64,000 nucleotides of DNA, from positions 10,580,784 through 10,644,783 of the forward strand of contig CM121341.1 of the NCBI GenBank assembly GCA_051530055.1. The letters run 5' to 3'. The stretch is from Neoechinorhynchus agilis (taxonomy: Eukaryota; Animalia; Acanthocephala). Under the pieces are notes generated by a model, which had not been told where the DNA came from, made no database searches, and saw only the letters and a program-made list of their open reading frames with translations. Position 1 is the stretch's first letter, and each line of letters begins with the position of its first letter. A program made the position numbers and the translations under genes. Shown piece by piece: positions 18,265 to 63,083 of the stretch.

Positions 18265-21200
18265 ATGGCACGACGATCTGGTGGACCCTTTGCGATATCA
18301 CCTGATCTTTCGCCTATTCAGCCTCTTCGGACTAAGCCGACGGCGGTCTTAGGCAACCATGTTACACTCAAAATCCTACTGCCTGGTTATGAAGCTCCCA
18401 AAATGATTAACGTGGATAAAATGATTACCGTGGACGCCACATGTGAAGAACTCGTGAGCAGACTCAGCTCCGGTGAGCTTCAAGCAACAAAGAAACGATT
18501 GAACGTCGATGCTGCTGCTCCTGGTAAACTCACTTTGTACAAAATGCCAACGGAAACCGCTCCAGGTCGATGGCTTCGTCCTCGGTCAACAATTGAATCG
18601 GAAAAACTTGGTCATTGGGACGTATTAGAGCTTAGATCACGAATGGAGAAACTAAGGTTCAATGTTAGTGATGTGGGTGCCCATGAAATATCGGTGGATT
18701 CAATGGTTCCATCAGGTGAACTGATGGTTGATATTTGTTCTAAATTTGACCTCCAATTCCCAGATGAATATGGTTTTAAGGTCGTTAGTAATAGACATGA
18801 ACATCAACAGTCTCTAGGAAGTTCATTAAGGCGTAAATCTGTTCATGGTCGATTTCAGTGGGTAAATCCTTCCCATCCATTTAAAAAGTACAGATTGGAA
18901 GAAGGCGCTGAAGTTCTGATTAGAAGAAGATTCTATTTTAACGATAACCTTGTAAATGAAACAACTCCTGCTGATCTAAACCTTCTTTATGCCGAATGCA
19001 GATTAGATGTTCTTGAGAACGATCAACATCATTTCCTCGGTTTAGATGAAGCGGTTTGTTTAGCTGGAATCCAATGTCAAGTCATAGAAGGGGATTATGT
19101 GAATGAACGCGAAGGAAGCACGAGACGATCTTCTAATTTTTTGGCTCGAGTTCTACCGAAAAAATTCGTTAAATCCAAAGGAGTCGAACGAATGGTCAGC
19201 CGGGAACACATGAAACATGCCGGTCTTAATGAATTCGATGCTAAGTTGGCCTATGTTAATCAATGCCGTGCCTTGTTCCCGGATTCCTATGGTTTCACAT
19301 TTTTTGTGGTCAAAGAACGAGTACAAGGGAAGGGGAAACTAGTTAACCGATTACTTGGAATCAGTAACTTCGAAACCACTTGTATCTGAGGCATTCTTTG
19401 GGTACCTAGAAATACAAGACTGTAAAAAAAGGAAATGAAAAACTCTAACCTCTCTCGGTTGAACTCTCTCTTGCTCATTTTCAAAGTTGTCCGTTTCTCT
19501 TTTTGAACCATTTACAGATATTTTCAATGTATCGTCTTCATCAGCTACCTTTTTTTCGCCGTTCTTGAATTTAGGAAACGATTTATTGCTCCATTTTATC
19601 TATATTCGTTTAAATCGCCAAAAAAATAAACAAACCTGTACCTTCGAATATCGACCTTTAACAAATCAAATTAATTTTTTTTCTACTATTTTCCCAATAC
19701 CTACCTTAATCAGAGATGAATTAATCACGCTAACGGTTTCGCCCACCGACGAATATCTAGTTCGCTACGTATCCCATTCGTTTCGAGTACGAGCGGTGAC
19801 CCACTAGTTGACTCGTGAGTTTGCTTGTATTCATTTGTAGTGAACGGGCTCGTTTTTTTATGACGAATCAAATTAATGTTCATTATGTATGTCTATATAT
19901 ATGATTGATTCTAATGTTTGTGTGTGTGCGAGCGTTTCAAACCAATACAATTCATCTCATTTTGGTCTCTGATACAAAGGTTCCGCTTAAAGATCCGATT
20001 TTACGACTAGACACAAAAACTCACCAAGTAATCCAATCATGGTCTCTAACTCATCTCCACCGATGGGGAGCATCATCGTCAATGTTTACGCTTGATTTTG
20101 GAGACTACGCAGAATCATATTATTCGGTTCAGACGACGGAAACAGAAGAGTTGGCGTTCATGATAAGTAAGTACATTGAATTGAATGTAAAATACAAACA
20201 ACAGCACGATGAACTAGAGGACGAAATAGAAGAGGATGAAGACGTTGTGGATTCTGTTAGACCAACGGGCGCTGTTATGTCTCCCCTTCCTGTCACATCA
20301 TCATCTATAGTCATACCAGAAGAGAACGAATATTTATACGCCGAAGCTCATAGGATTCAGAAGCTCATTCAAGAGATTGCATCCGCTCCATCAGCGAACG
20401 CATGCGCTGAGTCATTATCATCTTGCGACGAAACAAGGAAAGCTAACAGCATTCCTGCCACAACTACAAGTGTCGAATTCGTTCGTCAAATATCGGCAGA
20501 CTGTGCTCGTATCTGTGTTGCATATCCTAATTCAGCCAGAGTTCATTCTGAATTGTCCAATCTTTCTATAACGCTACTTAATGCAGAAATGTCAGACCAG
20601 AATGTCATTCTAGCTGCTCGAGGGCTGTGCCGAGCAATCTCAGATTTGGTTGATACGGTATGTGCGGGCAGTGCTACAACAGCTACTCCTCAAACGCAAC
20701 ACAAATCAGCATTCGATCATGCAACTCACGTAGCTACGGAATGTTCCAATCAAATCAATCGATTAACACGTCAGCGGTCTGACGTTCTTCATAAGCACGA
20801 TAAACTCGTTGCGGAATCTCGAAGTGTAGCACAGGCTACAGCCGATCTTGTCCTCAACGCGAAAAGTCTCCCTGAGCTCGTTTCGGATGCAACTGCATGC
20901 ACTCTAGCAGTCTCACGATTACTCGCGTGCGCAAAACTCGCTGCTATCTCAAAACCAAGGGCTAACGATATGGTCGGGGAGTGCTGTGAACGAGTAATGC
21001 GATGTTGTCAGCGGCTGTGCCATACAGCGTCTAAAGGGGATCAAATAGCTTGTTTTGAGCAAGAAATGCAAGCCGTAGAAGACAAAATTGACTCATTGAA
21101 GTGTACGTTAGCATGGCAAACCTCCGCTGGCGTAGTTGATGACATCTTGCAGTGTCTTCAAACGGTGAAATCATCCCAACGAATAGAAGATTCGACGAAG

Positions 21201-24200
21201 CTAAGACAACTCACCGCTCGTTTTGTCCTGTCCTTAAGACAGAGAGCTAAGATCTCAAGTGGGAAACGGTGTGACGATATTCTCGCTGATGCTCGTTTAC
21301 TCGGTGAGACAATCAATCAACTCTCAAATGGAATTGTTAAACAACGAGATACGTGTGACATTCAACGACGTTGTGATACTTTTCGATTTGCTGTTCTTCG
21401 AGCAAGTCTTTGGCTTCAGGATTCAGGTGATGATCAAATAGAGACTGGAGATACCTCAACTGGATCATGGATCAGTCAAATGCATAGCGCATGCCGTGAA
21501 GCCGTCTCAAGTTGTATTCGTCTCATTTCTCTTATACAACGTCATGAGCCTGTTAATGAAACACGCCCATTAACAAATATGATTCCAGTGCTAGTAGCCC
21601 ATATGAAATCATGCGTAGCTGATCCCAAAGACGTAGAGGCTCAAGATATTCTTTTGACAGCAGTGAAGGACTTTATAGAGCTAGCAGAGAGTCTCTATAG
21701 ACTCGCATCTACAAAAAGAACAGGGGTCTTGGCAGACGATCTTCAGTCTCATGTAACTGAAATGGGAAAGATTCGTGAAGCTGTAATTTCTGATTTTCAT
21801 GGGAATTTCGTGTCTGAAACTGTTGATATGATCGGACGAATGTGCGCTGATCTTGATCGTGGCCTTACGCACATACAAATCGAAGCCGGCTCCGATCTTG
21901 ATCCCGATGAAGCTTATCGATGCTTCATCAAAGCATTTGCATTTGTTCGTACCAGAGTTAACTATTGTTTGGAGAGTTTTGAGAAGCTTCCGATGGCTTC
22001 TATTGCATATTTGTCGGACGCTCTTACACTTCTTTACGACTCCGTTGTGAGGATTCACGCTTCGGATGTTTGCGTCCTCGACCGAACCACAATGGAGTTC
22101 ATCTGTCAGCGGACTTCAGATGCTCTTCATTCAATCCAAGATTTAGTAACTCAATTAGCCACAAATTCCGAAATGACCAAGTCATTCCAATCCCTTGACG
22201 AGCAGGTCCTTTCAGAAGCAATGGACGATTGTGTGGCGATGCTACCCGGTCACCGTGAGCTATTTTCAGCCATTAACAAACTAAATCAATCCGTCGCCGA
22301 GCATCATCGAGCAGCAGCTGCTGCTCTGGCAACTACTGGATGTGCCATGTCCGAAACACTCCATATATCTTCGATTTTAGTTAATCTTAACAAAAACGTG
22401 AACGCCTTTAACGTTGCCGTGTATCAGCTCGCTTCCTGTATTGATTCAGCAACTCCATTGTTAGTCGACCGAGTAACCGAGTCGTTTGATCAAATGATCG
22501 GATGTGCTTTGGCCGCCTGTGAATCTCGTCTTTTTGCTCCTAGGAATCATAAACTCAGTTTCCAAGTTCATACAATCCATTCTTGCGCGTTGGCCATGTT
22601 GGACAATGCCCGGGCTGTGTACGTCGCACGGATACTCCAAGCGGATCAAGAGGAGCCGTCGTGTTCGCCAGTTCGGATTTGTAATCTCGTGTCAAATGAA
22701 GTAAAACCGGTGATACCTTATTGTGTCCAATTGACTGAACGTCTTAATGAGCTCGTCTCTATGGCGGCAACAGCGAATGCAGACGTCCCTATTTGCGAGT
22801 ACGCTCTCGATAGATTAAAGCACGCTCGACAAGCTGTTTGCCGGAAACCTGGTACAATGGGTCCCACGAACAACATGACTTTTACGCAGGCTTTTGATCG
22901 AGTTTCTAAAGACGGATCTGATTTAGGCAGAGCGTTGAAGTTTTTGTTGACTGTAACAAAGGAACAAAGAAAAGACTGTGAGCTCCGGACTACTTATATA
23001 GCTCAAGCTGTTTCGGATGCTGCATGTGGACTAGTTGAGGCTGCAAGCCAAATCGCATACCTGATAGCTGCTCATCAGGACGGATGTGTAAGAGGTGAAC
23101 CAGGTCTAGTGGATCAGTTCACTTTCCATAAATGTGAACTCATTATCGAACGAACCTGTCATCGATTATTCGACTGCGAAAACGTCGAAGACGTCGAGGA
23201 TCTCTTGTTAACTGTAGCAGAGTTCGTATGTATAATTTGCAATGCAGCACGTAGATCTGCTGCTCGGACATGGACATGCTCAAATGATTCAAGTGCATCG
23301 AAATTCCTTGCCTGTAGTGAAGATCTTTCTAACGTGTCTTATCGATTGATCAATGAAACTGTCCAAGTTATAAATGCTGGAAACGGATCGTGCTTTGAGC
23401 GGATGCAAGGATGCAGGCAAATATCCGCGAGGTTACTTCAATCGACATCCGTGTTGTGCTCATACGCGGCTTCTAAGAAGTTCGCAGCGATTCCTGCTAC
23501 GATAAGTGAAAAGGGTGTCGAAATTCAAAAGGCAATGATCGACTCAGTCGGTGTTTTGGTCGATGGGACAAGTGCACTCATTGAAGGCCTTATTAAATGT
23601 GACGAGGAGGATAGGGATGCGGATAAAAACGGTAAACAAATCACGTCATTGGATAGTCGCGAAATTTGGCCGGAATTATCTGCTAGTACCAGACAAATAA
23701 GCAGTGGAATCGCGAGCTTGATTGCGACGATCACAAGCTCTGCGTCTCATCTTGTAGCTCAGGTGAACATTTATCGGTCTTTATGTGGTTCACAATCTTA
23801 AACAGCGCTTAAAACCTAATTTTATATTCAGCTCAAGCTTCGTATTCTCATAGAAAATATTAACCTCAATGTTTTTCAAAGTATTTTATACAAAAGACAG
23901 TATGTAACCGACAAACAACCCGTCTTTAGACAACTCTTATGGCCTGATTTTATACCTAATCCCAAGCTTTAATTGGTATAAAAAATAAAGAGGTTTACAT
24001 CAATCTTTTCGTATTTTTTAAGTCCTCCTTTCTACAAGGGGCCATTTTCTTGCTGACTACTGAAGAGTTTTAAAATGCGAAATTTTGAAAACTCTATATT
24101 TGGATAAATCCCTTTTCCCGGTAATGTTCACCTGACCCAAATCCCAGTACCCTTCAGAAGCTTACACTGAACACTCTACACAACCTAAGCGACGGTCAAT

Positions 24201-25003
24201 CAATAGAAACGATACAAGAAGACAACGACGAGCTAAATTTGCTGAACGAGATTAATTCATTGAAGCTAACAGACCTCCGTGAAGTCAGTTCCTTACCTCC
24301 AGAAACTCTTTTGGACCGAATTCTTTATACATCACTCCACATGTTTGAGTACATCAATCGTCTATTGTCACCAAGCTCGGCCGAGTTTTCATTGACGGGT
24401 GTAATGGCCGCTAGTGGTTCGTCAGCAATAGTTGAATCCATTAGCGCTTTACATTACGCTTACATGACATCTTTAAAGAACATCCTTCGGGCTAGTCTTT
24501 CTCTGGATAGTCAGATTGGATGTTCTCGGGATGTCCGTCCGTCTCCTATAGTCGTGCAGGCTGAATCTGTTCTCAAATCAGGTTATGAATTCATCACAAC
24601 TGCTTTTGAAGAGGATTCCTGTGAAGACAGATCCAAGCTCGGGCGCGTACACACAAAAGCAATTGAAGACCTTGTCTCTGTTGTACAAGAACAATATGAT
24701 CAGTGTAAGGCTAAACGTAAGCCGGTCATTAGTCAGCATAATACAGCGCTTCCACCGACTAGAGCCGTATTTCCTCCAATAATAGTACCGACAACTCGGC
24801 GCTACCTTCATCTCAGCGAGGATAGCTCAGATGAACTGAATGATGGCGGTGATGACCATGGAACGGATGTGTGCCACAGTTTACGTAAGGATACTCCTAA
24901 ACTCCATGAGCGTGAAATTGCTGCTTCAGCTGGAGTACAGGTCGATTCCTGTAGTCAGGATGTTAACAACGTTTTATCGGACATTCTTATCAATCTTGAT
25001 TGA
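18265..25003 (+). CDS. TLN: Divergent, shortened talin; exons 18265-19365, 19989-23755, 24139-25003; ~1910 aa
   Basis: FERM head (YGFTFFVVKERVQGKGKLVNRLLGI; FTLDFGDY..YYSVQTTE) followed by helical rod repeats; two stem-bounded interruptions. Confidence 0.85.
19366..19988 (+). other. Stem-bounded non-canonical intron, talin #1 (623 nt)
   Basis: AGT|AACTTCG...CCGCTT|AAA GAT gives RLLGISKDPILRLD, colinear with talin RLLGITKECVMRVD; TAA direct repeat; stem CGAAACC-TTGTATC / GATACAA-GGTTCCG. Confidence 0.7.
23756..24138 (+). other. Stem-bounded intron, talin #2 (383 nt; GT-AG alternative 23763-24157)
   Basis: Perfect 13-bp stem TCAGGTGAACATT / AATGTTCACCTGA; GT|AGC...CCC|A AAT is in frame. Confidence 0.55.
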
Positions 25004-26049: not shown

Positions 26050-28258
26050 ATGTTGAAAACCACTACACGTAGCCATGGTAACCGATTTGTATTTGAACCG
26101 ACTGTTGAAATAAATATTGAAAGCGTGAAGGTCGATATGAGGCCACTTCTTAGATATGATAATCTTGATCATTTATTCGAAAAGTGCGATATAGAACAAT
26201 CCCAAGCCCTCTGCTCCATTATATCAAAAGATGCTAGACTGTCGAACGATTGGTTTGACGGTCCTGTAGGGCGACGACGAATGATACATTGTGATTACGC
26301 AGCTTCTGGGAAGCCGTTAAAGAAAATCGAGAGATTCATGTCCACTCGGTTTTATTCAACATTCGACATGGATCTAAACGGGCCTTCCTATGCTTCCAAA
26401 ACTACCCGTTCGTACGTGAAACAAGCGGTAGACTTGATTCGAAAGGAGTGTAAATGTAGTCCAGACGATTACTTGTTTTTTGTCGGATCAGGTTCAACAT
26501 CAGCTGTAAACACATTGCTCAGTTTAATGAATATTAAATGTGAGCGACCACAAAAATTGACGGTTGTTGTGTCCTCGTTTGAACACCACTCAAATCTCCT
26601 GCCTTGGAATGAGATGGAAGCAAATATTAAAAAAGTGAAAGCTCGTGACGACGGCAAAATCGATATCGACGATCTAGCAAGCGTACTTGAACGATTGCAG
26701 AATAAGGGAAGGGATATAATCTGTTCATTTAGAGACGCTCGCTTCTTATCAACCCAAAACCGTTTGTAAGCTGAATTTTAGACATGTCTTTTTCACATGT
26801 TGGGTTCAGTTCATTTAATCGAGAGAGAAATGGATCCTTTCTATGTCCCGATTAAAGGAATTGAATTCAACATGCATTTAAAAGTCGAAATACCACAGTT
26901 GAAGGGCTAACGAGTTATCCCCTTTGATAAGAAGGAGAGCGTACACCGCTGCTAGTAATATAACCGGCGTGCTTCAAGATGTTGATGAAATCAGCGCACT
27001 TGTTCACAAATTTGAAGGATTAGTATTTTGGGACTATGCAACGGCTGGCCCATATATTCCCTTAGATATGAACCCAAACAAATCTTCCTATAAAGATGCG
27101 GTGTTCATTTCGGCACATAAGTTCGTCGGTGGTCCAGGAGCTCCGGGCTTGTTGATCGCGAAAAAGGATTTGTTGACACACGAGAAGGCATTAGAACTAC
27201 AAGTAGAAACACAAAGACGTAGCGTGGCTGGAGTGGTTAGATGTGGCCTAGCATTTCGAATAAAGAGCCTCCTTAACGCTGAGTTTGTGAAAGCCCGTGA
27301 AGAAGAGATTGTGGACGTGTTTAAAACCATTGTCTGTCGATGTCCGAATTTTATTATTTTAAGTAAAGATGGGCCTCCAAGGAGATTAATTCTTAAAGAG
27401 TTCACATCTTTACTACTAGGTGATTTCAAAGTCCCACGTCTTTCAGTATTTTCGTTCGTAATAGCACATCCCATGACGAAAAAGCTTCTTCATTATAACT
27501 TCATTGGTCAGCTTTTAAATGACTTTTTTGGAATTCAATCAAGAAATGGTCAGTTGTGTGCAGCACCGTATATATTTAACCTATTGGGCATTAGTGAAGA
27601 AATGGCGGTTAAGATCGCAAGACTTCAAGGTACTTTAACATGTGGAGTTGGCGATTCTTATGATGCGGATTTGAGTTTGAATGAAAACAAAAAGTTTAAG
27701 AAATGGAAGGATTTGGGACCCATTGCATTCGAGTGTGATTATAGAGGACCGTGCGCTGTCTACAAACCTGGAGTAAGTCGATTAAGCCTGCCATACTTTA
27801 TCGACGACCAAACTCTTCAATTCGTAGCGGATGCCGTCGAGTTTGTCGCAGAGGAAGGATGGAAATTAATTCCACTGTACACAATGAACGTTCAAACAGG
27901 CTCGTGGACCTATGAGAATTACATTTGTAAGAATATAAATTTAGCAGATATTAAAGAAGAGAAACCTGCGCTGGAGTTTATCACAAATAGGTGCAAACGA
28001 CTATCGGTCAAGAACCACAAACAAATGATCAATGCTGCCAGGGCAAAAGCAAAGCAAATGGTGCAAGGAGCGAGTACTATGAAGATCAATAACGCTGAAG
28101 AGGATCATCCAGAGTTGTGCTGGTTCGTAACGCCAAACGATGCCTTGAAATCTTTAACGGGATCGGACAAACAAGTGCATGTTAAGCCAGATGAATGTTT
28201 GAAAGTTTTTCAGCGCATTACTCTTTCTGAGACAAGTTGTAGGTCAGAAATGGAATAA
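26050..28258 (+). CDS. Class-V PLP aminotransferase / cysteine-desulfurase-like protein; exons 26050-26730, 26945-27360, 27418-28258; ~645 aa
   Basis: CDYAASG, EHHSNLLPW, AASNITG, WDYATAGPY, SAHKFVGG (PLP lysine) and RNGQLCAAPY motifs. Confidence 0.88.
26731..26944 (+). other. Stem-bounded non-canonical intron, desulfurase #1 (214 nt, AG...AC)
   Basis: TTT|AGAG...GTAC|ACC gives ICSFTAASN (the +2 register, also AG...AC, gives ICSFSAASN); stem ACGCTC-CTTCTTATCAA / TTGATAAGAAG-GAGCGT. Confidence 0.8.
27361..27417 (+). other. In-frame stem-bounded intron, desulfurase #2 (57 nt)
   Basis: 19-codon insertion within FIIL|GDFKVPRL; perfect 10-bp stem AGTAAAGATG / CATCTTTACT; TA direct repeat; a GT-AG reading 2 nt to the right gives Ser instead of Gly. 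Confidence 0.75.
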
Positions 28259-44005: not shown

Positions 44006-47000
44006 CTATATTGTTGATAGCTTGTACAATTCAGAGTACAGGCTCTCCTTAGAAATTAGTTCTTGATGAGTTCCACTTTCCGTTATTTTTCCCTTATCCA
44101 TTACGAATATATCATCGCAATCTTCAATTGTTCGCAGCCGATGAGCTATGCTTATGCTTCCCCTTCCCTTTTGAGCCTCTTCTAATGCAGCTTGGACCAT
44201 TTTTTCGCTCTCAGTATCGAGCGCACTCGTTGCCTCGTCCAACAGAAGAAGCTTTGGATTCCGAATTATTGCTCTAGCGATGCAAATTCTTTGTTTTTGA
44301 CCTCCACTAATCAAGGAACCTTTTGCACCAACGCGAGTGTCGTATCCGTCAGGAAGTTCACTCACAAAAGAATCGATATTGCACGTTTGAGCAGCCGCTC
44401 TAATCTCTTCAATCGTCACTTGTCGGTCGGTATCGCCAAATGCGATATTTTCAGCAATCGACCAGTCAAACAATACCGGTTCTTGTCCAACGAATCCCAA
44501 TTTCTTTCTGTACGATTTGATGTTAAGATCGCGAAGATTGTGACCATCAATCAGTATATTGCCATTAACCGGGTCATAGTACCGTTCTAGTAATTGTAGA
44601 ACAGTCGACTTTCCAGATCCGGATGAACCAACGAGGGCAATACTGCGACTGCTAGGGATGTGTATGTTCATGCTACGCAAAACTGGCACTCCTTCGCGTG
44701 TCGGATACTCAAAATCCACATTTTGAAATTTGATATCGCCGTTAAAGTGGTCGATTTCGATTCCGTCCGTAGACATACTGTCGATCTCAGGTTTTCTCGA
44801 TAAAACCTTGTGAACTTTCACAGCTGCCGCCGTAGCTTTTCCTTGATCTGGTGCCATTGCTTGGATTTGACCTACGCCCATGGCAGCAAACATCAAACAT
44901 CCAAACACGAACATCATGTCCTCAGTTGACATGAGACCTTTTATCGCACAGTTGTCCATCGAGATCATTTGTGATAAAAAGACCTACAACTACATAAATG
45001 GCCTAGTTTTAATTCTAGTATTGTGCTCGGGCCAGGTTTATTTACGTCGACCTATTTGAAATAAATTCTAAATGCAAATAATTTTCGATTCGCATTCAAA
45101 GGTTACGTACTAAAACCACTCTTTGATTACTATCGCCTTTATTTCCCTTTTAGTAGTTATCCCCATCCGGATTTAAATTCATAGATTTATTGCCGATGTT
45201 TCACGTCGGATAATTCCGACATTTCTTCGAGGTTTGTCATCTCATATTTAAAAACTTACAAGCATATTTTGGGATGATAAACCTTGAATAAATGTCGAAA
45301 TTATTCGACATGAAACATCCGCAATAAATCTATGAATTTAAATCCGGATGGGGATAACTACCAAAAAAAAGTATCTTTTCCCCGAAGATATAGCCTCTTT
45401 ACCTTCAGTAACAGCAACACGAACCGAATAAGTCGAGTTCGATGTTGAATCCTGAGTTATTACCAATTTTGGATTTCCGGTTGATCAATTTTGCTTCTAA
45501 GAAGAAGGCTATCTGCAATAACAAATTGCCCTCAGCAATTATGCAAACATTCTAGGTTTCCTTAAAAGCCTCAATAAATCTACATTGGACAATCCACTTA
45601 AACTCAGTGGACAAGCGTACAAAACAATAAAGTTCGCTCCAGCGTAGTATCCTGTCGCAAGTGCAAAAAACACGATTCCTTGAGAGAAGCCGAATATAAG
45701 TCCTGCGAAAATGCTCTTCTTAAAGTTCTTACTATACGTGTCCTCCACAATTTTTTCATAAAGTTCAATGAAATGTCTGTGAGCATTTAGTTGTTTTACC
45801 GTTCGGATATTCGCAGTGGCCTCCGTTGCAATTTTTCCTGCTGTTTCAAGTAACTTTTTGTCCTTGACGTCAAACCCTCCCATTATTTTCATTTGAACAA
45901 ATCCAGAAATTATAAGGACTGGAATAAATGCGATGATAACGAGGCATAGTTGCCATCCAAACACAAAGGCGACGACTGTTCCGGTTCCAAGAATTGCGAA
46001 TGTAGAAACTACAACACCTAGCCGTGTTCCCGTAGCTCCTTGAACAGACGCGGCTTCGGTTGAGAGCATGGTACAAACACTGCCAACACTATTTTCCTCC
46101 AAATCAAAATATCCTATTTCTTGGCGAAGAATAGCTTTAAACAATCGTTCTCGTATTCGTTTGGTTAAATTCTCTCCCGATATTCCGAATGCAAGCCCTG
46201 CTCCGAATTGCGAAATGAGCGAACAGAGACCAAAGATAAAGAAGAGTAACGAATAAAGATCAACTCGTCGTTGTCGTTCGTCAGCATTGCAATGAGCAAA
46301 CACTAGTAGAATTCGAGCCATATAAATTTGGAAAAGAGTCTGCAGCGTGCCAAAGATGGCTGCACAAATGCAACCAACAATCATGTTTATCAAGGGATTA
46401 CAAGCCAACAGGTACTGGAAAAAAACGGAAATTTTATCAGTCGTCAGATCTTCATCTAAAGCAAATCATTTGCTAATGCCAAGATTAGCTTGAAATCCCC
46501 TGATCTGTGGCACTTCTGGCTTGTTAAGTATGAAAACTTCCTTTATCGCCTGCCTTGTAATTTGCTTTTCCTCAGCTTCCGCTTCTTTAGGTTCATCTTC
46601 CTTTATGGATCCTTTTTCGCTTGCAACTGCTGTTTTATCAGAAAATGTACCTCTCTTTGAATGTAGTCTAGCTCTCTCGGGCTTTTTCTCAGTCCCTGTC
46701 GAATACGCTTTTACCAGTTTGTTATAAATACCATCGATCAACATTAACTCATCGTGAGTTCCCTGTTCAGCAGCACGGCCATTATCAATGGCCACGATCA
46801 GATCGGCGTTTCTTATAGTCGAAAGTCGATGAGCGATGATCACCGTTGTACGACCTTTGCTAGCACTTTCCAGAGCTTTCTGAACAGACCGTTCACTTTC
46901 AGCATCGAGGGCACTGGTCGCTTCGTCCAATAAAAGAATCTTCGGATTATTAATAATTGCACGTGCAATCGCAATTCGTTGACGCTGTCCACCGCTCAGA

Positions 47001-49063
47001 GTCGATCCAGATTCTCCCACAAATGTGTTGTATTTATCAGGTAGCATATCGATGAACTCGGTAGCGTTAGCTACTTCACAGGCTGCTTTAATTTCTTCAT
47101 CGGTTGCATCTTTCTTTGCCATACGGATGTTATCAGCAATAGTTGCCGAGAAAAGGACCGGCTCCTGACTTACCAAACCAATGAAACTTCGATAACTTTC
47201 TAGTGCTAGTTCTCGAATATCCTTAGAACCCAGTTTTATAGAACCGTTTAATGGCTGGTAGTACCTTATTCTAATGATTATCATCTTTGTATAGATAAAT
47301 AAAGTGAAGAAAATAACCACTAGTTTAAAAGGAGCTGAACAACAGTAGATTTTCCACAGCCACTCTCACCAACCAAGGCAGTTACTTTGCCCTTTGGAAT
47401 CGTAAGATTCATGTCTTTTAGAACAGTTATTTCCTTGCGTGTAGGATAGGCGAACGACACATTGTCGAAATGAATTGATTCATTAAAATCGGTAACCGAA
47501 GATTCTCTTACCTTAACCTCGGTTTTCAAATATTCTTCATACTTTGCTTTCTCCGCGTTTTCTTCAGTGGGTGAATCAATTATTTCGTATAACGGCTTTC
47601 CTGACGCTCTGGCTTCACTCACAGCACCAAAATGAGGAATAGTTCCACCAATATTGAAGACCGCTGTAAGTATACTGAAAAATACTATCAGTAATCCACC
47701 AATCGTGAGTTCTCCCAATTTAATCAATTTCGCTCCATACCAGAAACCTATGGCGTAAGTCGAAAAGACCACAAACCAAAGAGAAGCCTGCATCAGTGAT
47801 GTGAATGCGGACTTCTTTATTCCCTGACTTTTAGCCGCTTTGAGATGAGTAACATACTTTTCGGATAGGATTTTCTGACCATTGAATGCTTGTACTGTAC
47901 GTATGTTTCTACGGAAATGTTTCATTTCCTTTTAAGAAATTAATCGAAATGGGTCCGAAAGCTTTTAAACTTTCCTTGTTAACGCATATTTGGTCAACCT
48001 GTAAAAAGCGATTTTCTCTGATGTATTCTAAACAAGTTACGGGATTTAAGAGATAGTATATAAAATTTTGTTCATTATCTCTCAAAATGCGCTTCAATTA
48101 TTCTAGATAGGGGACTTTTCGGTTCTTTAGATGGTTCTCCGGTCCAAATTCGAGCTTTATAACCTAGAAACCTTCCCGATTTGAAGAAGACAAAAGGAAA
48201 CATTTCAACTTAATCGTTTGCTGAGCCACACTTCCTGCTTTTGCATAAGACTTACTTTCCTTCTTTGTCGACGAGAATGTGACTAATGTCGATAAAGTTG
48301 CCGATAGTATCAACGGTGGCGACACCGCAATCATGACCAGAGACAGTTTCCAACTTTTAACAAACGCAATGATTATAATTGCTATGGTGGTAGCTGCAGT
48401 TTGTATAATCATTCCTATTTTATCACCTACCCCACTTTTGAATTTGTTAACATTTTCAACAAGATAGCTGTTGACCATTCCGGCATCGTGGACATCGAAC
48501 CATTCAATTGGATTCGCCATAACAGCTCTGATCACGTTTCTTCGAAGGTTGAGAACGATATGTTCAGACGCTGCAGATAGAGCTGCCAATTCTATTCCAG
48601 CGGTAATGAAAGAAGCGATTCCAATCAGTGTGAAGTATAGGGAGTTTCGTGAGATTGGCTTAAGTAGGTCAACTTCAGGTAGAGTGATATTTAGACTTGT
48701 AAGATTACATTTAAATATAAGTTCGTTGAAGTTACTTTCATCAACCTCAGGTGGACAAATGTCGCTTATATTTGTATAATCGAGAATTTGACAAAATCTA
48801 TCACTTATAAAATCGTCCGTGTTCTCTCCATAGACGATCATCATCAGAGGCCATACTATGGAGAACCCTAATGCGAATATCCAACCGATAGCTGTTAAAA
48901 TTAGAGCTTTCTTATCGGCATACTTGAACAATTCTCTATACGTTAGAGCTGACGAATCGGTTTTCAAATACTTGCGAATGATAGCAACGATATTACTAAG
49001 TTTAAACGTTTCTAATAGTCCTTCAGACTCTTCCTCGTCCTTTTCATTTTGGGGTTTACCCAT
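44006..49063 (-). CDS. ABCB1: ABCB1/P-glycoprotein full transporter, 5 exons, ~1298 aa
   Basis: Two TMD-NBD halves with GESGCGKS, LSGGQRQRIAIAR, GSSGSGKS and ISGGQKQR; removing four stem-bounded introns gives one continuous ORF of typical size. Confidence 0.92.
44943..45623 (-). other. Stem-bounded non-canonical intron, ABCB1 #4 (681 nt), containing a family-A palindrome at 45154-45361
   Basis: ATT GT|TTTG...GCGAT|A AAA gives GANFIVKGLMS; stem TTGTAC-TTGTCCA / TGGACAA-GTGCGA; register uncertain by a few nt. Confidence 0.7.
46385..46504 (-). other. Stem-bounded non-canonical intron, ABCB1 #3 (120 nt, contains an in-frame stop)
   Basis: CAG|ATCAGG...ATAAAC|ATG gives EVPQMIVG; stem ATCAGGGGATTTCAAGCTAA / TTGGCTTGTAATCCCTTGAT with 2 G-U pairs. 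Confidence 0.8.
47268..47326 (-). other. Stem-bounded non-canonical intron, ABCB1 #2 (59 nt)
   Basis: TT|AAACTAG...TTAGAAT|A AGG gives KSTVVQLLLRYY; TAA direct repeat; stem CTAGTGGTTATTTTC / GATGATAATCATTAG with 3 G-U pairs. Confidence 0.85.
47911..48211 (-). other. Stem-bounded intron, ABCB1 #1 (301 nt; the +2 register is GT-AG)
   Basis: ATT|AAGTT...TCCGT|AGA gives QQTIRNIRTV; TA direct repeat; stem GAAATGTTTC-CTTTT / AAAAG-GAAACATTTC. Confidence 0.75.
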
Positions 49064-53107: not shown

Positions 53108-53929
53108 ACTAAAAACGCACTAGAGTTCAAGAATAAACATTTTCTGCGAGTGAAGGATAAAAACAATGTGAATCTACGATTTTTCACGTTGTGTTCGTCG
53201 GAAATTAAAGGATATGAAACTTAGCGTCTTTGGTAAAATTAGCGAAATATATTTAGAAGATGAACACAAAAATATCCGACGAAAAAGCATGTACTTGTAA
53301 TTAAGTGAAAATACAAAATAAAACAAAAACACAAAAGGAATCGAGCAAATTCATTAGGACCCGGTTCGAAAAATAATTTTATTGTAATGAAATACGAAAT
53401 TACATATTTAAAAACTTACATGCAATGATTGATAAAGAGAGGTTTCCTCTTTCGAAATATTTCGCGAACAATAAAATGATTTCTAACTGGGTGATTATAT
53501 TCTAAGCAAGTCAAAATTAAGCATGAATAAAAACAACCCAAAATGAACGTATCAACGAAAAGACGAATGTGTGTACAAAATAAACATTTAATTTTACAAG
53601 CACAAGTACACAAATAGCAAAAGCAAATACTTTTGTTATTTAAACTTTGTTTTTTCCTTCCTTGCTCTTCATGGATTGATCACCTGTTAATTGGGCGGGT
53701 GGAATAAAAGGAAAAGAGTGGGATTCGGAAGGATAACACATAGAGAGTGTTTCTTGGATTGGTATGGCACGCTTGTACAATAAATAAAAACAATAAATAA
53801 AAGCAACTAACCTACCAAAAACAATTTTACCTATCACAGTCAACTTACCTAAGGTAAAAGGTTCGGTGACTTATTCTTTTTCCTCTTTCAAATAAAACGT
53901 GTTTATATCCGCATTCCTCCCTCGTCGTC

Positions 53930-55035: not shown

Positions 55036-55680
55036 CAAAGTAGACAATCACATTCATTTATTCTGTCAGTACTTAAGTGTTTGGTTCCTCTTTAACAAAA
55101 TAAAACGTGTTATTATTATGTTAATCATTATGTACATATTTAAGAAAATGAGCAAATCAATACAATGGTATATTTTTATTCTGTGAACATAAATAACACA
55201 TACAAAGATATCTGAATATTTTAGTCTGTAATGGGACTGGTGAATTTGACCATAAACCCGTTGCTCACAAATAAAAACAAATTAGGACGTTTGCACGAAT
55301 ATACACGATACACACGAACGTATAAACATCAAAATCAATGATCGTATACAAAATCGAAGCAAAATTTGATGAGCAGATTTAACTAAGCAATCAAAGGCAA
55401 AATTGGTTAAGGATTAAAACGATGCAAAAAACAATATAAGTTTGCCACGACAATATGATTCCTCTATTCCGCCTATTTTTCTTTTTTTTCTTTTTTTTTG
55501 TTATTGGCCTTTTTTTGAGGCGTTTAGAAAGTGTCTTCATTGAACTTCTTGGGATTGGTTGACTTTTTCCGAATTAAACCCGATTCCGAACCCAAGCGCC
55601 GCGCATGCAGTTACAGATGAGTGCTACTCATCCCGCCTATTCCGCCTACGCTTCATTCCGGTCAGGTTTATTTTGGTAAA

Positions 55681-57424
55681 CTATTGATTGACAAGTAAAA
55701 CGTTGGCACGTGTGACGGTTCTTTTATTGAGTGCTTGAATCGGTCGATGATTTCCGTAGGGTAACTGTTCAAATAGGACGGCGATGATAACGTCATTAAT
55801 CCCCCTCTTGTTTACCTTAGGCCGAATCTTTCTAAACGCTTCCATCTATAGCTAAATCTTTTGAAGGTTGATTAAAAAAGGCTAAACTTACGTCCTTCTT
55901 ATTGATTTTTCCAATGGTTGGAATCACCATCCATTTTACAGTTTCATAGCAACCTGGTGTCGTAAGTGATCCGTCATAAGAAAGCAATTCATCGTGGACG
56001 TTTAAGAGTTTATTGATATCAATCTCGTCTTCGGTATCATCACCTTCATTAAAGTCGTCTAATAGATCCACAAATGACGCCAGTTCATGGTCTGTTTTTT
56101 CATCAATCTGAACTTGAATGCCCCTTTAGCGATCGCACTTTATTATGTTACTACAAACCTGAAACAATTTTCCAAAAATTAGAAGACCTTCCGGCGTTTT
56201 GATGGCTTCATCTACAGAATATTTTTCATTAAAGAATACTACATGCATCTTTTCAGTGTTAAAAAACAATAAGCAATCGTGGTATATAAAGTAATTACCT
56301 CTAAAGGATAACTTCTATTGTTTATCATATGTTCAGAGCCAACTCTGTTGTTTTCGCCCCAATGAAAATGAAATTGACTGAATGTGTATGTATTATGTAT
56401 TCCATGTTGGTGGAGATGGACCGACGGCACTCCCGTATGTTTGGTGGCATGAGCCAAAACGGTTGTCGGTTCCAAAGAGATGAAAACATTCACTAAATGG
56501 TTTAAGTGAAGAATCAAACTTAATGAGTCTTTTATGCCGTTCCCTAGGTGTATAGGTATACGTAAAAAAAGATCAACAAGCTATCCTTAAAGCATCAGTA
56601 ATTATTAGATGTGGTTATGAATCATATCGAGAGAGAAAATCCATAGGGATGTTAAATTTTGACTTATAGTGAAGATAATCACCCGTTTAAAAATCATTTT
56701 ATTATTCTGAAATATTTCGCGAGGTTGAAGAATAAAATGATTTTTAACCGGGATTTTCTTCACCACAAGTTAAAATGAATGCTTCCTTTTCAAAATCTCA
56801 TTTCTCATATATGCACAGCATGCAGGAATCTTCAATTAATGGCGCCGTCTCTAAGAAATTCAATTTTTAAAGCTATCTAAACATCTCTATGATATATGGA
56901 TGTATTGCGGTTCGCTTACTGATAAAACGTTACCCACTCTACCGGATATGAATTCTGGGCATGCCCAAATAAGCTTTTGTCCGTTTGTTTCCGATTAAAC
57001 AAATGCTCTGTCCCATAGAAACTCACCTTGACTAGAACGAGTGTTCATTACAACCGTCACATTATTGCGTACAGGATCAAATACTTGTTGGATATTGATC
57101 GGTGATTGTCTTTTTCCGGCACAGTCTCGATAGTGTTTGCCCCAATCATTAGTGTTGTTGTACGACCAAACGAATTCATGTTTCTTGCATTCTCTAGTTG
57201 CCAAGACACAACCCACTTCATTTGAGTTCTATAAATTTACACTGACTCATAAAACGGACAAATTTACCTATAAGAACAAGAATTATTCCAAGAAGGATGA
57301 GAATAACGGTAGTGTGAACAATGGACTTTCTATATTTCCTATAAACATTAACACTGAATTTAACTGTGATAATGGCAAGCACTTACGGTGGGTTGTTTCC
57401 AAGGAAGCTCGCGAGTTTTGTCAT
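55681..57424 (-). CDS. Alpha-carbonic anhydrase with N-terminal TM anchor, 8 exons, ~347 aa
   Basis: WSY, QSPINI, QFHFHWG, GSEH, YPLEMH, YDGSLTTPGC and NHRPIQALN motifs; six GT-AG introns (48, 52, 53, 50, 51, 46 nt) plus one 400-nt stem-bounded intron; total length is frame-consistent. Confidence 0.9.
56546..56945 (-). other. Stem-bounded non-canonical intron, carbonic anhydrase (400 nt; register uncertain by about 3 nt)
   Basis: No in-frame GT-AG pair at the junction; AT|CCGG...ACCT|A GGG restores the frame; stems GGGTA-ACG / CGT-TACCT and ATCAGTAAG / CTTGTTGAT (2 G-U). Confidence 0.65.
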
Positions 57425-58017
57425 GGTAAAATAGGATAATCAGGACGTGTGGCGTTGTAAATTTAGCAGGTATTTATCATAACTATACGACCATTATGAC
57501 TCTTAACCTAGAAAAAGAAGTGTTTTATATGCAAGGTCTGAGTGGATAGCAATAGAATATCAATAACGGAAACCACAATGCATACAATTCTCAGCATAAG
57601 TTCTCTAGCGAAAATGAGCCAAGGCTCTTAACTACTAAGGGATACGTTGCAACTTCGTGATCTAGAACGAGCGTTGCTGGAGGGGCTGTACCCAAATAAT
57701 ATCATTTTGCTATGCGGATGCCTCTGGCAGGAATGACAGGTGGATAAGCGTGAAAATTCGTCTACCTTACAGGGAAAGAAATTTGCGACTTGAAATCATT
57801 ATATTTGTTCAAAGCGTGACTTAACGGTTTAGTTACCTTTTGTTTTCAAGCCTAAGCGATTTTGAAGGCGACTTTGACAGTCGTAAATAATAGATGTTTG
57901 TTTAAAGTAACCATGAATTTCTATTGAAAAAATGAAGAAACCCGGGAAACAGGAAAGCTGAGAGGTGTCATGTTTCAACCATATCTATGATTCCATTCAC
58001 ATATGAGAAATCTGATA

Positions 58018-60366
58018 TTAATCTTTATTACTCATTCGATCGAATTGGAAGCTCCAATCATAAAAAAGAGGTCGTCTATCAAACCTGCAATCATCGCTGG
58101 CACTTTGGTTAATACAGCAGCAAGGCGTGGCTACGGCCGTTTTGTGCCGATTGATTCCATAAAGGTGGAAAAATCTTTTAACTTTATGAAGTGCATTATC
58201 GTCGCCTTCCGATTTCTTAAAAATTTCGACAGGACCGCATCGTCGCGATCTTAAGTCAGCGATTTGTTCCAGCTCCTCAAAGGTCATCTCCATTTCCGAC
58301 TCGTCGTTCTGGCCAACTTCCGATGGTCGCAGCTCAGCGGAAGGAGGGTTGCTAAGGATATCATTAAGGATTGGAATCTCAGTGCTCATAAAACGAGCAA
58401 TATCTCGAACTTGTGTTTTGTTTATACCGCCAATGGGATTAATATCAGCGCTCGAACAATCATACTTGGTAAAATAACCTATAAGTGTGCGTCTTCGCGC
58501 ACAACACGAAAAATTTTCATTTTCAGATCTCCATTTTCCTTGAACGAGGGCGCACAATAATGTTTTCATCGGCATTTCCTGTTCCGAGCATCAAACGACA
58601 TTTATTCGAAGTAGAGGATACTTGGTTTAGCAAATAAGCGATTACCATTCTGAGCCTTGCCTGGACGTTCTGAAGTGCCTGATCTTGTTGTTTAGAACCT
58701 CCGTCATGTGAGAATGTTGGTCTCGATTCACACAAATCAAGCACTTTACTCACAACATCGTCGATAGATCTTTCAACATGAGTCGACCCAAGTTGTTTAG
58801 CTAAAAGCCTAGAAAGTTCACATGTTTTCTTTGAATTATTTTTGGTATTAAGGTTGGCCGTGTGAAGCAGGTCATTCATTGTAACGTCGATTTTAAGTTC
58901 CATAATCATCAGTTTTCTCAGATAATAAACCAGCGAAGCAGTCACCGCGCTGTCGATTCCTCCACTTAGTGGAATAAAGAATCCGTTGGACCTTGAACGA
59001 CGCATATAATCATGTAGGAAAATACAACAGACTCTAATAACATTTTCTGGATATTCAATGAATGACGAATGATTAGCCACCGGAAAACTCAAATCGCATA
59101 TCAAGCCATATCGATCACTAAGGCCCAATCGATTATCTTTAGCAATATACTCGCCATTGAGTATAACACAAGTTCGATTGTCGAACACTACTCGATCGCC
59201 ATCGCAACCAACCATGTTTGCATAGATGAAAACTCGTTGAGGATTTAAGTGACTATGATGTTCTACAATCGAATGGAAATCCACGAGCTTCTCCTTGGTT
59301 TCCACTCCATCATTGTAAACGTTCTAAATGTTTTTCGTTGATGCTTTCTGAATCATTTAGGCAAAAGTGATCGCAGGAATTAAAAATAGAAATATCAAGA
59401 AACGATTTGTTCGTTTGACCAAAATTTTCCGTTGCATGATCAGCAAAATTTATTATCATCTTCAAATCTTCCAACACTATCGGTGTCGTTCCAAATTTGA
59501 TTTCATACGGTGCGATGCTCACAAAATCCGCTGGCACTTCGTCAAAAACAACGGCGGTTTCAGATGATTTCCACGGTTTAAACCACCGAGTTTCGGCATA
59601 AAATCCGTGGTTTCTCAAATTGCACTTTGGAACTATCGCAATAATTCGGTTTCCTTTTAAAACAATTCGGCAAATATAGGAATCGCCTTTAAATTTCACT
59701 GGCATGCCGATATCATGTGGCGTCGATCACGAAATTCAATAAAGAAGGTCCAAGGGAATTCAGAGCATAATATAATGCGTTAAGTGAAACTATAAGATTA
59801 TTGGGTTATTTTCCACGAAATCGGAAATCTTTGCTAACTGCAAACAATAAGGAAAGAAGTTTATATTAGATGGCTACTTTAAAACTGCCGCGATCGGAAT
59901 TATCCTCACGGTCGAACTACTTGCAGGATCTAGTAAATTGTAGACGTACACTAATTTCAAAAGCACAAGGCTAAAAATGCATAATGTTGCGGTCAATTAT
60001 AGTTTGAACTAAAACTACTGGGATCGGAACCATCCTCATGGTCCAAATACCTGCAAGGTCTAGTAAATTCGAGACGTACACAAACTTCAAAAGCACAAGG
60101 CTTAAAATTTCAACGATCACGCCATAATGCATGCCTCTTGCATCCTCATGATTAGCGATTTTCCACAACATTTCCCAACAATGCCGAAACGTATCTTGTT
60201 CATAAAAATGATCACCGCAGCTATATCCAGACAATTCTAATTCCGGCCCAGTTCGATAATGACAACTATTTTGCTTGGCACTTTTCAAACTAGCCAATAT
60301 ATTTTGAGAGTTGTGAACGAAGTTTAAGGCTTGTTGATTAAGACTTGTAACCGCAATAATAACCAT
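58018..60366 (-). CDS. NADSYN1: Glutamine-dependent-type NAD+ synthetase, divergent, 4 exons, ~600 aa
   Basis: GPELELSGYSC, ANMVGCDGDR, PLSGGIDS, LQNVQARLRMV, GYFTKYDCSSADINPIGG and SAEL motifs. Confidence 0.92.
58483..58558 (-). other. Stem-bounded non-canonical intron, NADSYN1 #3 (76 nt)
   Basis: ATT|ATTG...CACTT|ATA gives NADENIIGYFTKYD; TTAT direct repeat; stem TGTGCG..TCG / CGA..CGCACA; no in-frame GT-AG found. Confidence 0.85.
59260..59320 (-). other. Stem-bounded intron, NADSYN1 #2 (61 nt; slides up to 6 nt in a TAGAAC direct repeat)
   Basis: Removal restores the frame and the L-14aa-AN spacing; stem TTTACAAT-GA-TGGAG / TTCCA-TC-ATTGTAGA. Confidence 0.75.
59717..60125 (-). other. Stem-bounded non-canonical intron, NADSYN1 #1 (409 nt, AT...AC)
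   Basis: CAT T|ATGGC...GCCAC|AT GAT gives RGMHYDIGMPV; stem TGGCGT-GATC-GT-GAAATT / AATTTC-GT-GATC-ACGCCA. Confidence 0.85.
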
Positions 60367-60714
60367 CAGTCAGTGTCTAAAATGCGATTTGATTAAAAAG
60401 CAAAAGCCATTGAAGAAAATTCAATTATCCATGACGGAGATTAAAGTGATTTCCTTGAAATCTCAATAGATTCATACGAGAGTGGCGTTTTAATGCATTA
60501 TTTGATTTTATAGAACTTCATAGGATGCTAAAATCAATCAGAAGTAAATAATGAAATAATCTTGTAGTCTACAAAGCAGCTAGTCCAATCAAAAAACATC
60601 ATTGAAAATATAGGAGATGAAAGTTTCGTCGATGAAAAGCGCCAAAGTTAAAAAGATTCAATTTCCGAAAAATCAATGTCTAAATCAAGTCTTTTTGTGT
60701 CTCGGTCATGAATT

Positions 60715-61376
60715 TCACAACCATCTGAAATGAGCAAAGGCCCTATTCGCCTCAGCTGTTCGATGAAGTTCGATTTTCTTTTCATAAGCTCTTCCCCGTT
60801 TGTTCATTCCATCAATAAGTTCATGTGCCAATCGCTGCCAAATGCGATAAGGACTCACTTTGTCCGTCTCAGCAGCTTGAATGATCCATTTGATGGCCAT
60901 GAATTCCTTATAATAATCCGGGGCGGGCGTAGGTATTGTGTAAGAAACTCCTCCTCGAAAGCACTTTGTAATATTGACAATTGGTTTAACATTCTGGATG
61001 GCCAAATGCAGCACTTGGCGTGGATTTACCACAACTGATGAATCGCCGGTTTCGTTTATTTTCTTTACTTGAATCGCTTTTATATAGAAGAACGCCTTGT
61101 CTAATATTCGCTCAGACATTTCACGGTCACCTTCCCACATCATTATGCTTATGAATCGTCTTGACAGAACATCTTATAAGGTTTCAAGTATGCAGAAACA
61201 AACCTTACTTGATTATCATAGAAGAAGGATAATGTGCGTGCACCGAAAGGAGGTTTTACAGGTTGAAAATGCCGTTGATCCGTGTCGGATATAAGATTGA
61301 GTTCGTCGAGGTCATTTAAAGCATCAATATATTCAGGTCCATATAGTGCTAAGCGTCGAGACAACATTGTGCTCAT
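60715..61376 (-). CDS. MRPS7: Mitochondrial ribosomal protein S7 (uS7m), 2 exons, GT-AG intron 61160-61203 (44 nt), 205 aa
   Basis: RRFISIMMWEGD, AIQNVKPIV, RGGVSYTIP and ELHRTAEANRAFAHFRW motifs. Confidence 0.93.
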
Positions 61377-61768
61377 CAAGGTCGAACTAAATTCGAGTTT
61401 TAAGGCAGGAATTAGTCCTTTTGCGTAATGATGGTTGAATCCACAGTCTATGACGATCAGTCAGTCGGGCATATAAAGAAAAAAAGGTTGAAATTTCTTA
61501 CAAACTGCAGATTTTTACATTTCTTCATATCAATATAGAGACGACTTTTGCTAACAAGAGTTAAAAAAACAAAATTAGCGTAAAATTACATAATTTTAAC
61601 ATTATTGTTGTTGAAATCAACTTGTATTTTGTTCTCAGTATAAATAACCTACATTTTCGTTCCGATAGATTTGCTTAGAGTGACACCAAGAATCATGATC
61701 TAAAAACAACTCAATAGTGGGGGTTCTAAGTACAAACTTCACCAATTACATCTCGCTCTTGCTTAATC

Positions 61769-63083
61769 TCAAAAACAATACAGTTTCACACATTCGAGTC
61801 CACAAATACTAAAAAAGTCTTTGTGCTTGGTAGATTCATTTCCATTAGAAATCGTGGTGAACTTGACACGTCTGACCTGTTCAATTATCTGTTCCTTCGA
61901 AACAACATGCCCATCCACTTCCACACGGCATAGACTGATTTTTCCATAGACTAAAGAGCGATTAAAGGAAGCAGCTACAAAGGCAACTTGAACTGGATCC
62001 GTGGGTTGTTGCCGTTTGACCGTCCTGACCGCTAGAACATCTCTGAACGGAATCGACGGTAGTTTAAACTCCTTCGAGTGTCCGTTGCTCGCATCCAAGA
62101 AACCGATCGAAGATCCATGAGAAACAAAAAGACAATACCGACCGCAACAACTCACAGAGTTCGCCCAACCAATGGTCTGAACGCAATGAGTCACTTCAGA
62201 TCGCTTAACATTTACGATTCTAGGGTTCGGTGATTTTGTCTACTAGATCGCCCGAGTGCGCAAACTCACCGTCCATAACGAAGCGATCGGAGCATGCACA
62301 TGCAATTGTAGATCGGCCGGCCCAATCGATCGAGAGTATAGAGTATGCGAATGAGGAGTCTTCGCGTGAGGATCGATGGACCCGTCTCGCTATCCACAAT
62401 TGGTTTATGGAATCGAAATGAGAAACGGCTATCGTGGAGCAAGCGGATCCTACTGCGAATTGTTGACCGTCCAGGGACCATCGAATGCAGTTGGCTGCCC
62501 GTGAAACATGGATCATTACCAAATAGGACTCTAGAGATTCTCCGGACCATACAAAAGCGTTTCGATCAGCGCCGCAAGACGCTAAGCCTCGAGGAGAGGA
62601 CCAGTCAAGACCTGTGACGCGACCATTGTGTTCTTTGAGGACTTTGATTGGACATTCTGAGGTGCCGTTGTCTTGATTGAATCCACACAAAGGAAATATG
62701 TACGAACTTTATGATTCTCAGGACTTTGAAGAATGTGCAATAAAGATAAGAAATTCAATTGGGAATCGAATTCCGAAAATAAGTGAAAAACTCGTAGTTC
62801 CATTGCTACAAAACGTTTAAATGTATGAAGAACACCGATTGACTTCCATTTCCTTAAAAAGTTCTAGAATTAACATCCAAAACGTCTCCATGCGTTCTGA
62901 GAACCAATGGTTCTAAATATGTTCATTGCCGAACGAAGCAGCCAATCGCGTACAATCTTCACTCAACGAATGACAATAGACCCGACCGGACACCGGAGCT
63001 TCACTTGGGAGATCAAATGAACGATAGAGCTGAACTTGTTCGTGATCCCATTCAAACGCGGCTGCCGTGGCGGCACAGGTCAT
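61769..63083 (-). CDS. ARPC1: Arp2/3 complex subunit 1 (p41 WD40), 3 exons, ~348 aa
   Basis: CHSLSED, LKEHNGRVTGLDW, SCGADRNAFVW, RAANCIRWS, FAVGS, IGWANSV and FVSHGSS motifs. Confidence 0.88.
62222..62276 (-). other. Stem-bounded non-canonical intron, ARPC1 #2 (55 nt)
   Basis: GTT|ATGG...ACCCT|AGA gives CSDRFVRIV (cf. SCDFKCRIF); TA direct repeat; stem GG-CGGTGA-TTTG / CAAA-TCACCG-CC. Confidence 0.85.
62702..62914 (-). other. Stem-bounded non-canonical intron, ARPC1 #1 (213 nt)
   Basis: ATT T|AGAAC...TTCGT|AC ATA gives GNEHIYIF (cf. NNHEVHIY) and removes a TAG; TA direct repeat; stem GAAC-TGGTTCTCAG / CTGAGAATCA-GTTC. Confidence 0.85.

Follow-up and report, generated by a model that had tools for sequence, protein, structure and literature searches.

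Introns without GT-AG ends, closed by terminal inverted repeats, in genes of the acanthocephalan Neoechinorhynchus agilis

We analyzed a 64,000-nucleotide (nt) stretch of the genome of the acanthocephalan Neoechinorhynchus agilis (GenBank assembly GCA_051530055.1, contig CM121341.1, forward-strand positions 10,580,784 to 10,644,783; hereafter, the window), in which protein-coding genes are interrupted by inserts whose two ends can pair with each other. In the NAD synthetase and ARPC1 genes, RNA and DNA data confirmed that these inserts are real intervening sequences, which are removed exactly in RNA, with junctions that are not GT-AG and that lie at the base of a terminal helix. An earlier note on this DNA, made from the sequence alone, had listed 15 interruptions in seven genes and ascribed them to an undescribed splicing system with T|A...Y|A junctions (the bar marks the junction; Y is C or T) and a distinct mechanism. 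The introns are supported by our analysis, while their architecture has been published for other organisms, as discussed below.

Results

Removal of the inserts from RNA

RNA joints and the state of the DNA were analyzed across positions 57900-63200 using three RNA-seq contig sets (X3, X4, and X10) and one raw whole-genome shotgun (WGS) run (X8). As shown in Table 1, seven identical joints were present in all three contig sets; five of the seven introns in this RNA-covered stretch were non-GT-AG, and the remaining two were GT-AG. None of the five RNA-verified inserts could be read as a GT-AG, GC-AG, or U12-type intron in any register allowed by the ambiguity of the junction. The RNA contigs thus yielded non-GT-AG joints that were absent from the WGS reads and did not correspond to nearby GT-AG pairs. 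When the exons were joined as in the RNA, continuous open reading frames (ORFs) of 600 amino acids (aa) for NAD synthetase and 353 aa for ARPC1 were obtained and conserved blocks were restored, indicating that the inserts are intervening sequences, as had been claimed, and not pseudogene lesions.

In the WGS run, at about 15-20x, no read joined any of the skipped stretches, and the depth was even, at about 10-25 reads, across every insert. These data bear on the possibility that the inserts are cut from the DNA of expressing nuclei by programmed excision, like the TA-bounded, Tc1/mariner-derived internal eliminated sequences of ciliates. Such excision would account for the TA at both ends, one copy of which is kept, for the lack of sequence relationship among the inserts, and for the precision of removal. 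However, joined reads were lacking at all five sites, unspliced transcripts exist, and the affected genes have housekeeping roles and are expressed in most cells, making DNA excision extremely improbable. Unspliced contigs of the 409-nt NAD synthetase intron reached ~4% of exon depth, the same level as that of the 266-nt GT-AG intron (about 3-4%), indicating that the inserts are transcribed and then removed with an efficiency similar to that of normal introns.

Short direct repeats around a stable hairpin are a classic setting for template switching by reverse transcriptase, and all RNA evidence used here is based on complementary DNA (cDNA). The enzyme could have jumped the hairpin between the direct repeats, in which case the mRNA would keep an insert that is translated, bypassed by the ribosome, or part of a dead gene. 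Nevertheless, the skipped form was found at full exon depth in three libraries, with the retained form absent or at ~4%, and the 409-nt intron was skipped as completely as the short hairpins. Furthermore, the lengths of four of the five RNA-verified inserts are not divisible by three; if the inserts were kept, NAD synthetase and ARPC1 would be frameshifted, although the exons of both genes are otherwise intact and conserved. Therefore, we regard a reverse-transcription artefact as very unlikely.

Table 1. Introns of the window with boundaries located by RNA joints or homology, and canonical controls (z, whole-fold z score; p, terminal duplex compared with random window segments)
Feature	Length (nt)	Position	Strand	Evidence and properties
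NAD synthetase intron	76	58481..58556	-	RNA joint; direct repeat TTAT; 6-bp closing helix; terminal duplex p=0.020
NAD synthetase intron	52	59264..59315	-	RNA joint; TA repeat; near-perfect hairpin; fold z -4.7; p=0.0005
NAD synthetase intron	409	59714..60122	-	RNA joint; ATG repeat; terminal inverted repeat ~20 nt; p=0.040
ARPC1 intron	55	62221..62275	-	RNA joint; TA repeat; unused GTGAGT inside; p=0.019
ARPC1 intron	213	62701..62913	-	RNA joint; TA repeat; p=0.003
MRPS7 GT-AG intron (control)	44	61160..61203	-	RNA joint; no end pairing, p=0.45; fold z 0.0
MRPS7 5' untranslated region GT-AG intron (control)	266	61387..61652	-	RNA joint; no end pairing, p=0.66
Talin intron	623	19366..19988	+	Adjacent residues in five talins align to 19365 and 19989; TAA repeat; no canonical reading; splits FERM F3 lobe
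Talin second intron		23763..24157	+	GT-AG in public model; 13-bp inverted repeat near ends, 3' arm ~20 nt inside acceptor; TCAG junction repeat
Desulfurase-like gene intron	214	26731..26944	+	Homologue alignments; reads AG...AC; terminal inverted repeat ~20 nt
Desulfurase-like gene, in-frame hairpin intron (tentative)	57	27362..27418	+	All homologues have a 19-aa gap here; TA repeat; 10-bp inverted repeat; fold z -3.9
ABCB intron	~678	44945..45622	-	Boundaries to within about a codon; nested 97-nt-arm foldback element inside; T|T at 5' side
ABCB in-frame intron with stop codon	120	46389..46508	-	Gap exactly 40 aa vs N. agilis paralogue P0114; strongest stem of set, fold z -5.2
ABCB intron after Walker A	59	47267..47325	-	TAA repeat; fold z -3.2
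ABCB intron	301	47911..48211	-	Pfam continuity 187/188; perfect 10-bp end helix; T|A...T|A or, two bases shifted, GT...AG

Structure of the ends and junctions

Next, we analyzed the pairing of the intron ends by comparing, for each RNA-verified intron, the energy of the duplex between its first and last 30 nt with that of 4000 random window segments of the same length. Since the junctions had been fixed by RNA, the test involved no search freedom. End pairing of the five introns was stronger than that of the random segments (Fisher 4e-7), in contrast to the two GT-AG controls (p=0.45 and 0.66), whose ends do not pair. When introns were compared with one another, each 5' end paired best with its own 3' end; no stem sequence common to different introns was found and no intron resembled another, in agreement with the description of the stems as unrelated in sequence. 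The minimum-energy fold closed the ends in all six short introns, with strong whole-fold z scores in four of them (-3.2 to -5.2) and about -0.9 in two, compared with 0.0 and +0.9 for canonical introns of 44 and 46 nt.

The direct repeats across the junctions of the five RNA-verified introns were TTAT, TA, ATG, TA, and TA. A direct repeat was likewise present in every one of the ten introns with fixed boundaries, five verified by RNA and five fixed by homology. These repeats are 1-4 nt long, mostly 2-3; seven of the ten contain TA, and two are TAA. The inverted repeats, 6-22 base pairs (bp) long, begin 0-4 nt inside the direct repeat. Around the 213-nt ARPC1 intron (62693-62922), we also observed two offset copies of ACATATTT, both of which are kept in the mRNA, where they encode the conserved H-I-Y region; they represent either a longer target-site duplication or chance.

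All registers allowed by these repeats were considered in the junction tally of the ten introns. T|A could be read on both sides in seven, T|A...C|A in two, and C|A...T|A in one. T|A at the 5' side and Y|A at the 3' side thus fitted nine of the ten introns in one register, and the C|A...T|A intron departed from the rule; together with the weaker cases described below, this 7/2/1 tally is close to the 9/3/3 originally counted. Read in its middle register, a short direct repeat (TA, TAA, TTAT, or ATG) yields the T|A...Y|A rule; such a repeat is the signature of target-site duplication around terminal inverted repeats. No register combined a GT or GC start with an AG end, and the sole AT...AC reading begins with ATGGCG, which is not the U12 consensus. 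Self-splicing was also considered and rejected; an Rfam search found no ribozyme or group I/II match, returning 5S ribosomal RNA (rRNA) and weak generic hairpin matches.

Introns located by homology

Only junctions fixed by RNA or homology were counted as evidence, and homology is the basis for the introns of the talin, desulfurase-like, and ABCB genes. At the 214-nt intron of the desulfurase-like gene, rotifer, acanthocephalan, and deuterostome homologues run ...CSF straight into TAASN.... The 57-nt hairpin of the same gene is a tentative intron judged from the sequence, and this insert could simply be translated. For the ABCB intron that follows Walker A, each GT-AG option meets a stop codon and none is workable. 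The two readings of the 301-nt ABCB intron differ in their product by R versus K, and the paralogue has R at this place. None of the four ABCB introns occurs in this paralogue, which is interrupted at another place by a single GT-AG intron. The second talin intron may be an intermediate form, or a transposon-derived intron that uses canonical sites.

A brute-force search for in-frame stem-closed deletions at every ORF junction returned many false positives with energies of -17 to -24 kcal/mol, which would remove conserved residues, and it was rejected as evidence. Candidates proposed from a stem without RNA or homology therefore carry little weight. One of these, at 52288-52432 in a glycosyltransferase-like gene (51.3-53.1 kb), is placed by its structure and shows T|T at the 5' side; the gene itself gave no Pfam match and no homologues. 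In the carbonic-anhydrase gene, the claimed stem-bounded intron was not located, and GT-AG introns were found, for example at 55846-55891. In all, five introns were verified by RNA and the boundaries of five more were fixed by homology. A sixth homology case, the ~678-nt ABCB intron, is bounded to within about a codon, and the 301-nt ABCB intron can also be read as GT-AG.

Effects on public gene models

The public gene models failed at each of the non-canonical introns that were examined (18265-25003, 26050-28258, 44006-49063, and 58018-63083), being split, truncated, or incorrectly spliced. Talin is split: its 1298-aa ORF corresponds to the public hypothetical protein ACOME3_002480 (99% identity), and model P0001 lacks the 374-aa first talin exon. 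Model P0013 is truncated, beginning downstream of the first non-canonical intron of the desulfurase-like gene and reading through the 57-nt hairpin, and P0111 covers a single ABCB fragment. In P0261, a conserved block of NAD synthetase is lost through a false GT-AG intron, and a separate gene call of 131 aa covers the first exon. The MRPS7-ARPC1 region is covered by one 432-aa call with a Ribosomal_S7 domain, which, judging from this span, may fuse the two genes.

Published BUSCO scores of the genome and the transcriptome are 47.1% versus 54.9% for metazoan and 58.4% versus 71.0% for eukaryotic orthologues (PMC12690905). The lower score of the genome fits a pattern of broken gene models. Published claims that this lineage has lost genes to an extreme degree may accordingly be inflated where they are based on gene finding in genomes.

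Leaders and other features of the window

Several RNA contigs carried 5' leaders that are not encoded beside the gene and are joined at canonical ...TTTAG acceptors (minus strand; 61699 for MRPS7 and 60376 for NAD synthetase). The MRPS7 leader ends in ...AAAAACTTACAAGCA, with variants between libraries, and that of NAD synthetase is different, ending in ...CTCACTACTATAACA. These leaders look like the products of spliced-leader (SL) trans-splicing. SL trans-splicing is known in rotifers, and no report of it in acanthocephalans was found in our literature search. An exact copy of the last 14 bases of the MRPS7 leader was observed in the loop of the 97-nt-arm foldback (45148-45366) within the last ABCB intron, and near copies lie at 43294-43430 and 53411-53424; these places may hold SL RNA genes. 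One X10 contig runs unbroken from MRPS7 across a 320-nt spacer into exon 1 of NAD synthetase (60123-61386), and the downstream gene has its own leader, which suggests an operon-like dicistronic transcript resolved by trans-splicing.

The window further contains a 5S rRNA array on the minus strand (14261-14940; two full copies and one partial copy, period 267 bp). A 339-bp tandem repeat follows at 16726-17886, with 3.4 copies at 99% identity, each unit having a 33-nt inverted repeat as well as a sequence close to the leader motif. Remnants of retrotransposons without long terminal repeats were observed at 31000-38200, where reverse-transcriptase-like ORFs lie in opposite orientations and the GC skew is strong and opposite on either side of ~34 kb. 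A degenerate C/T-rich satellite (53946-55038; units of ~25, 46, and 66 nt) gives a spurious 322-aa ORF.

Discussion

Origin and mechanism

The reading that we favor, and consider probable without being certain of it, is that these sequences are true introns, once insertions of miniature inverted-repeat transposable element (MITE)-like elements into coding exons, which are now removed from RNA by a U2-type spliceosome whose relaxed recognition of the ends is helped by the helix. In this process, a small non-autonomous DNA transposon would insert into a coding exon, bringing inverted repeats at its ends and creating a short duplication of the target site (TA, TAA, or similar). The inverted repeats would then pair in the pre-mRNA and bring both ends next to each other at the helix base, and the element plus one copy of the duplication would be cut out, by which the reading frame that preceded the insertion would be restored.

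We infer a transposon origin from several features. A TA or TAA repeat around inverted repeats is the insertion footprint of a Tc1/mariner- or PIF-type non-autonomous element. In size, inverted repeats, and TA/TAA duplication, the introns fit MITEs (Stowaway/Tourist-like), and foldback elements abound in the intergenic parts of the window as well. The absence of all four ABCB introns from the paralogue fits a recent gain. Separately, the foldback elements at 10942-11130 and 29509-29667 were seen to share the ends ...TTTTGCCACCC...ATTTAAAT and form a small MITE-like family outside genes. As for the catalyst, a relaxed spliceosome, with the helix replacing sequence signals, appears most likely, on the grounds of parsimony with the one animal precedent, Fritillaria borealis. 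GT-AG cis-splicing and trans-splicing onto AG acceptors coexist with the non-canonical introns in the window.

Four observations weigh against this interpretation. The RNA evidence consists of assembled contigs and not of raw reads. Two of the RNA-verified stems are modest, at 6-10 bp and a whole-fold z of about -0.9. No second copy of any intron was found within the 64-kb window, the range in which copies were sought, and the inverted repeats are mutually unrelated, so that membership in a transposon family stays putative. Finally, the 3' ends have neither a polypyrimidine tract nor an AG, and the 5' ends have no complementarity to U1, so that recognition by a standard spliceosome is not obvious.

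The last of these observations leads to a non-spliceosomal alternative, which is unlikely in our estimation: a structure-specific endonuclease would cleave the terminal helix at its base, on both strands, and the exons would then be joined by an RtcB-like RNA ligase, with no need for a splice-site sequence. Consistent with such a pair of enzymes, no sequence is common to the junctions or the stems, the 5' ends lack a consensus just as the 3' ends lack their usual signals, and the cuts fall within 0-4 nt of the helix base. Besides, the 52-57-nt hairpins leave little unpaired room for recognition of a branch site, and the machinery that removes the nonconventional introns of euglenids is likewise unknown (PMC12501133). 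Conversely, a single continuous helix, cut on both sides at its base, is predicted in place of a bulge-helix-bulge, the G|C of the IRE1 site occurs in no junction in any register, and introns of 400-620 nt, whose ends pair over only ~20 bp, behave like the short hairpins. The sole animal precedent, F. borealis, moreover uses the U2 spliceosome (PMC13326754). A bolder form of this idea, a structure-guided and sequence-independent pathway of RNA excision and ligation apart from the spliceosome, which would recognize any helix with a short direct repeat on its flanks and thereby clear transposon insertions from the messages of an animal, seems to us quite improbable.

The distinct mechanism proposed in the earlier note does not follow from these results, since its junction rule reduces to one register of the direct repeat and the data do not separate a modified spliceosome from an endonuclease and ligase. 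Nor is the system undescribed, as the architecture has been published for F. borealis (PMC13326754, PMC11282704) and for Amoebophrya (PMC7789003).

Comparison with known systems

In tRNA-type splicing, the cuts lie in two 3-nt bulges split by a 4-bp helix, and the IRE1-RtcB pathway acts on CNG|CNGN loops. The N. agilis introns differ from both in that one continuous helix is predicted and no junction is G|C. They resemble the internal eliminated sequences of ciliates in being TA-bounded, diverse in sequence, and removed precisely with one TA left; however, those transposon-derived sequences are cut from DNA, whereas the N. agilis inserts stay in the DNA and are lost from the RNA.

Canonical introners, or MITE-derived GT-AG introns, of Micromonas and Aureococcus arise when a transposon insertion with inverted repeats and a target-site duplication makes an intron (PMC11282704). 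In that case, GT-AG sites are supplied by the element or the target, and none are used in the introns reported here, although the second talin intron (GT-AG, with a 13-bp inverted repeat) may be of that kind. Euglenid nonconventional introns, whose machinery is unknown, have ends that pair and carry the signature N3-CDG ... CHG-N5-6|R (PMC12501133). Both they and the N. agilis introns bring the splice sites together by end pairing and coexist with conventional introns, but the euglenid signature was found in none of the ten introns in any register.

The closest architectural match is with the introner elements of Amoebophrya, a parasitic dinoflagellate. Their inverted repeats measure 8-20 nt and their direct repeats 3-5 nt, no dinucleotide is common to them, most have no assigned family, and the U1 small nuclear RNA of this organism is apparently missing (PMC7789003). 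The N. agilis introns share the inverted repeats at the ends, the direct repeats overlapping the boundaries, the lack of a dinucleotide signature, and a host that is a parasite with a compact genome. They differ in that the host of the former is a protist and that its direct repeats of 3-5 nt compare with 1-4 nt here.

For the larvacean tunicate F. borealis (Henriet et al. 2019; Soo et al. 2026), it has been reported that ~95% of introns are non-GT-AG. These introns carry inverted repeats and target-site duplications, a YAY triplet both precedes the 5' site and forms the last three intron bases, and removal needs the U2 spliceosome (PMC13326754, PMC11282704). AG/AC and AG/AT ends dominate, and a duplication of U2AF was shown (PMC13326754). 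The likeness to N. agilis is extensive: an animal host, non-GT-AG ends, terminal inverted repeats, a repeat common to both junctions, a minority of coexisting GT-AG introns, failure of gene prediction, and lineage-specific intron positions in genes that seemingly have few other introns. Since Y|A...Y|A is an equally valid reading of the YAY repeat, the junction rule of the earlier note is not distinct from it. Nevertheless, YAY occurred on both sides in two of our ten introns and at the 3' end in four, and AG...AC in one; only the YA core was general, and the repeat was mostly TA or TAA. Furthermore, N. agilis is a protostome parasite, and its introns probably originated independently of those of F. 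borealis.

To our knowledge, this kind of intron has been described among animals only in Fritillaria tunicates so far. The word "intron" is absent from the main texts of the N. agilis papers searched, and our literature search found no reports of non-canonical introns in Acanthocephala, Seison, other rotifers, or Syndermata. N. agilis would be the second animal lineage, and the first among protostomes, with a large share of introns that ignore the GT-AG rule. As an independent case, it allows one to ask which changes of the splicing machinery recur under invasion by transposon-derived introns. Taken together, the introns of N. agilis are a new lineage of an architecture that is known from F. 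borealis and Amoebophrya and was undescribed for Acanthocephala.

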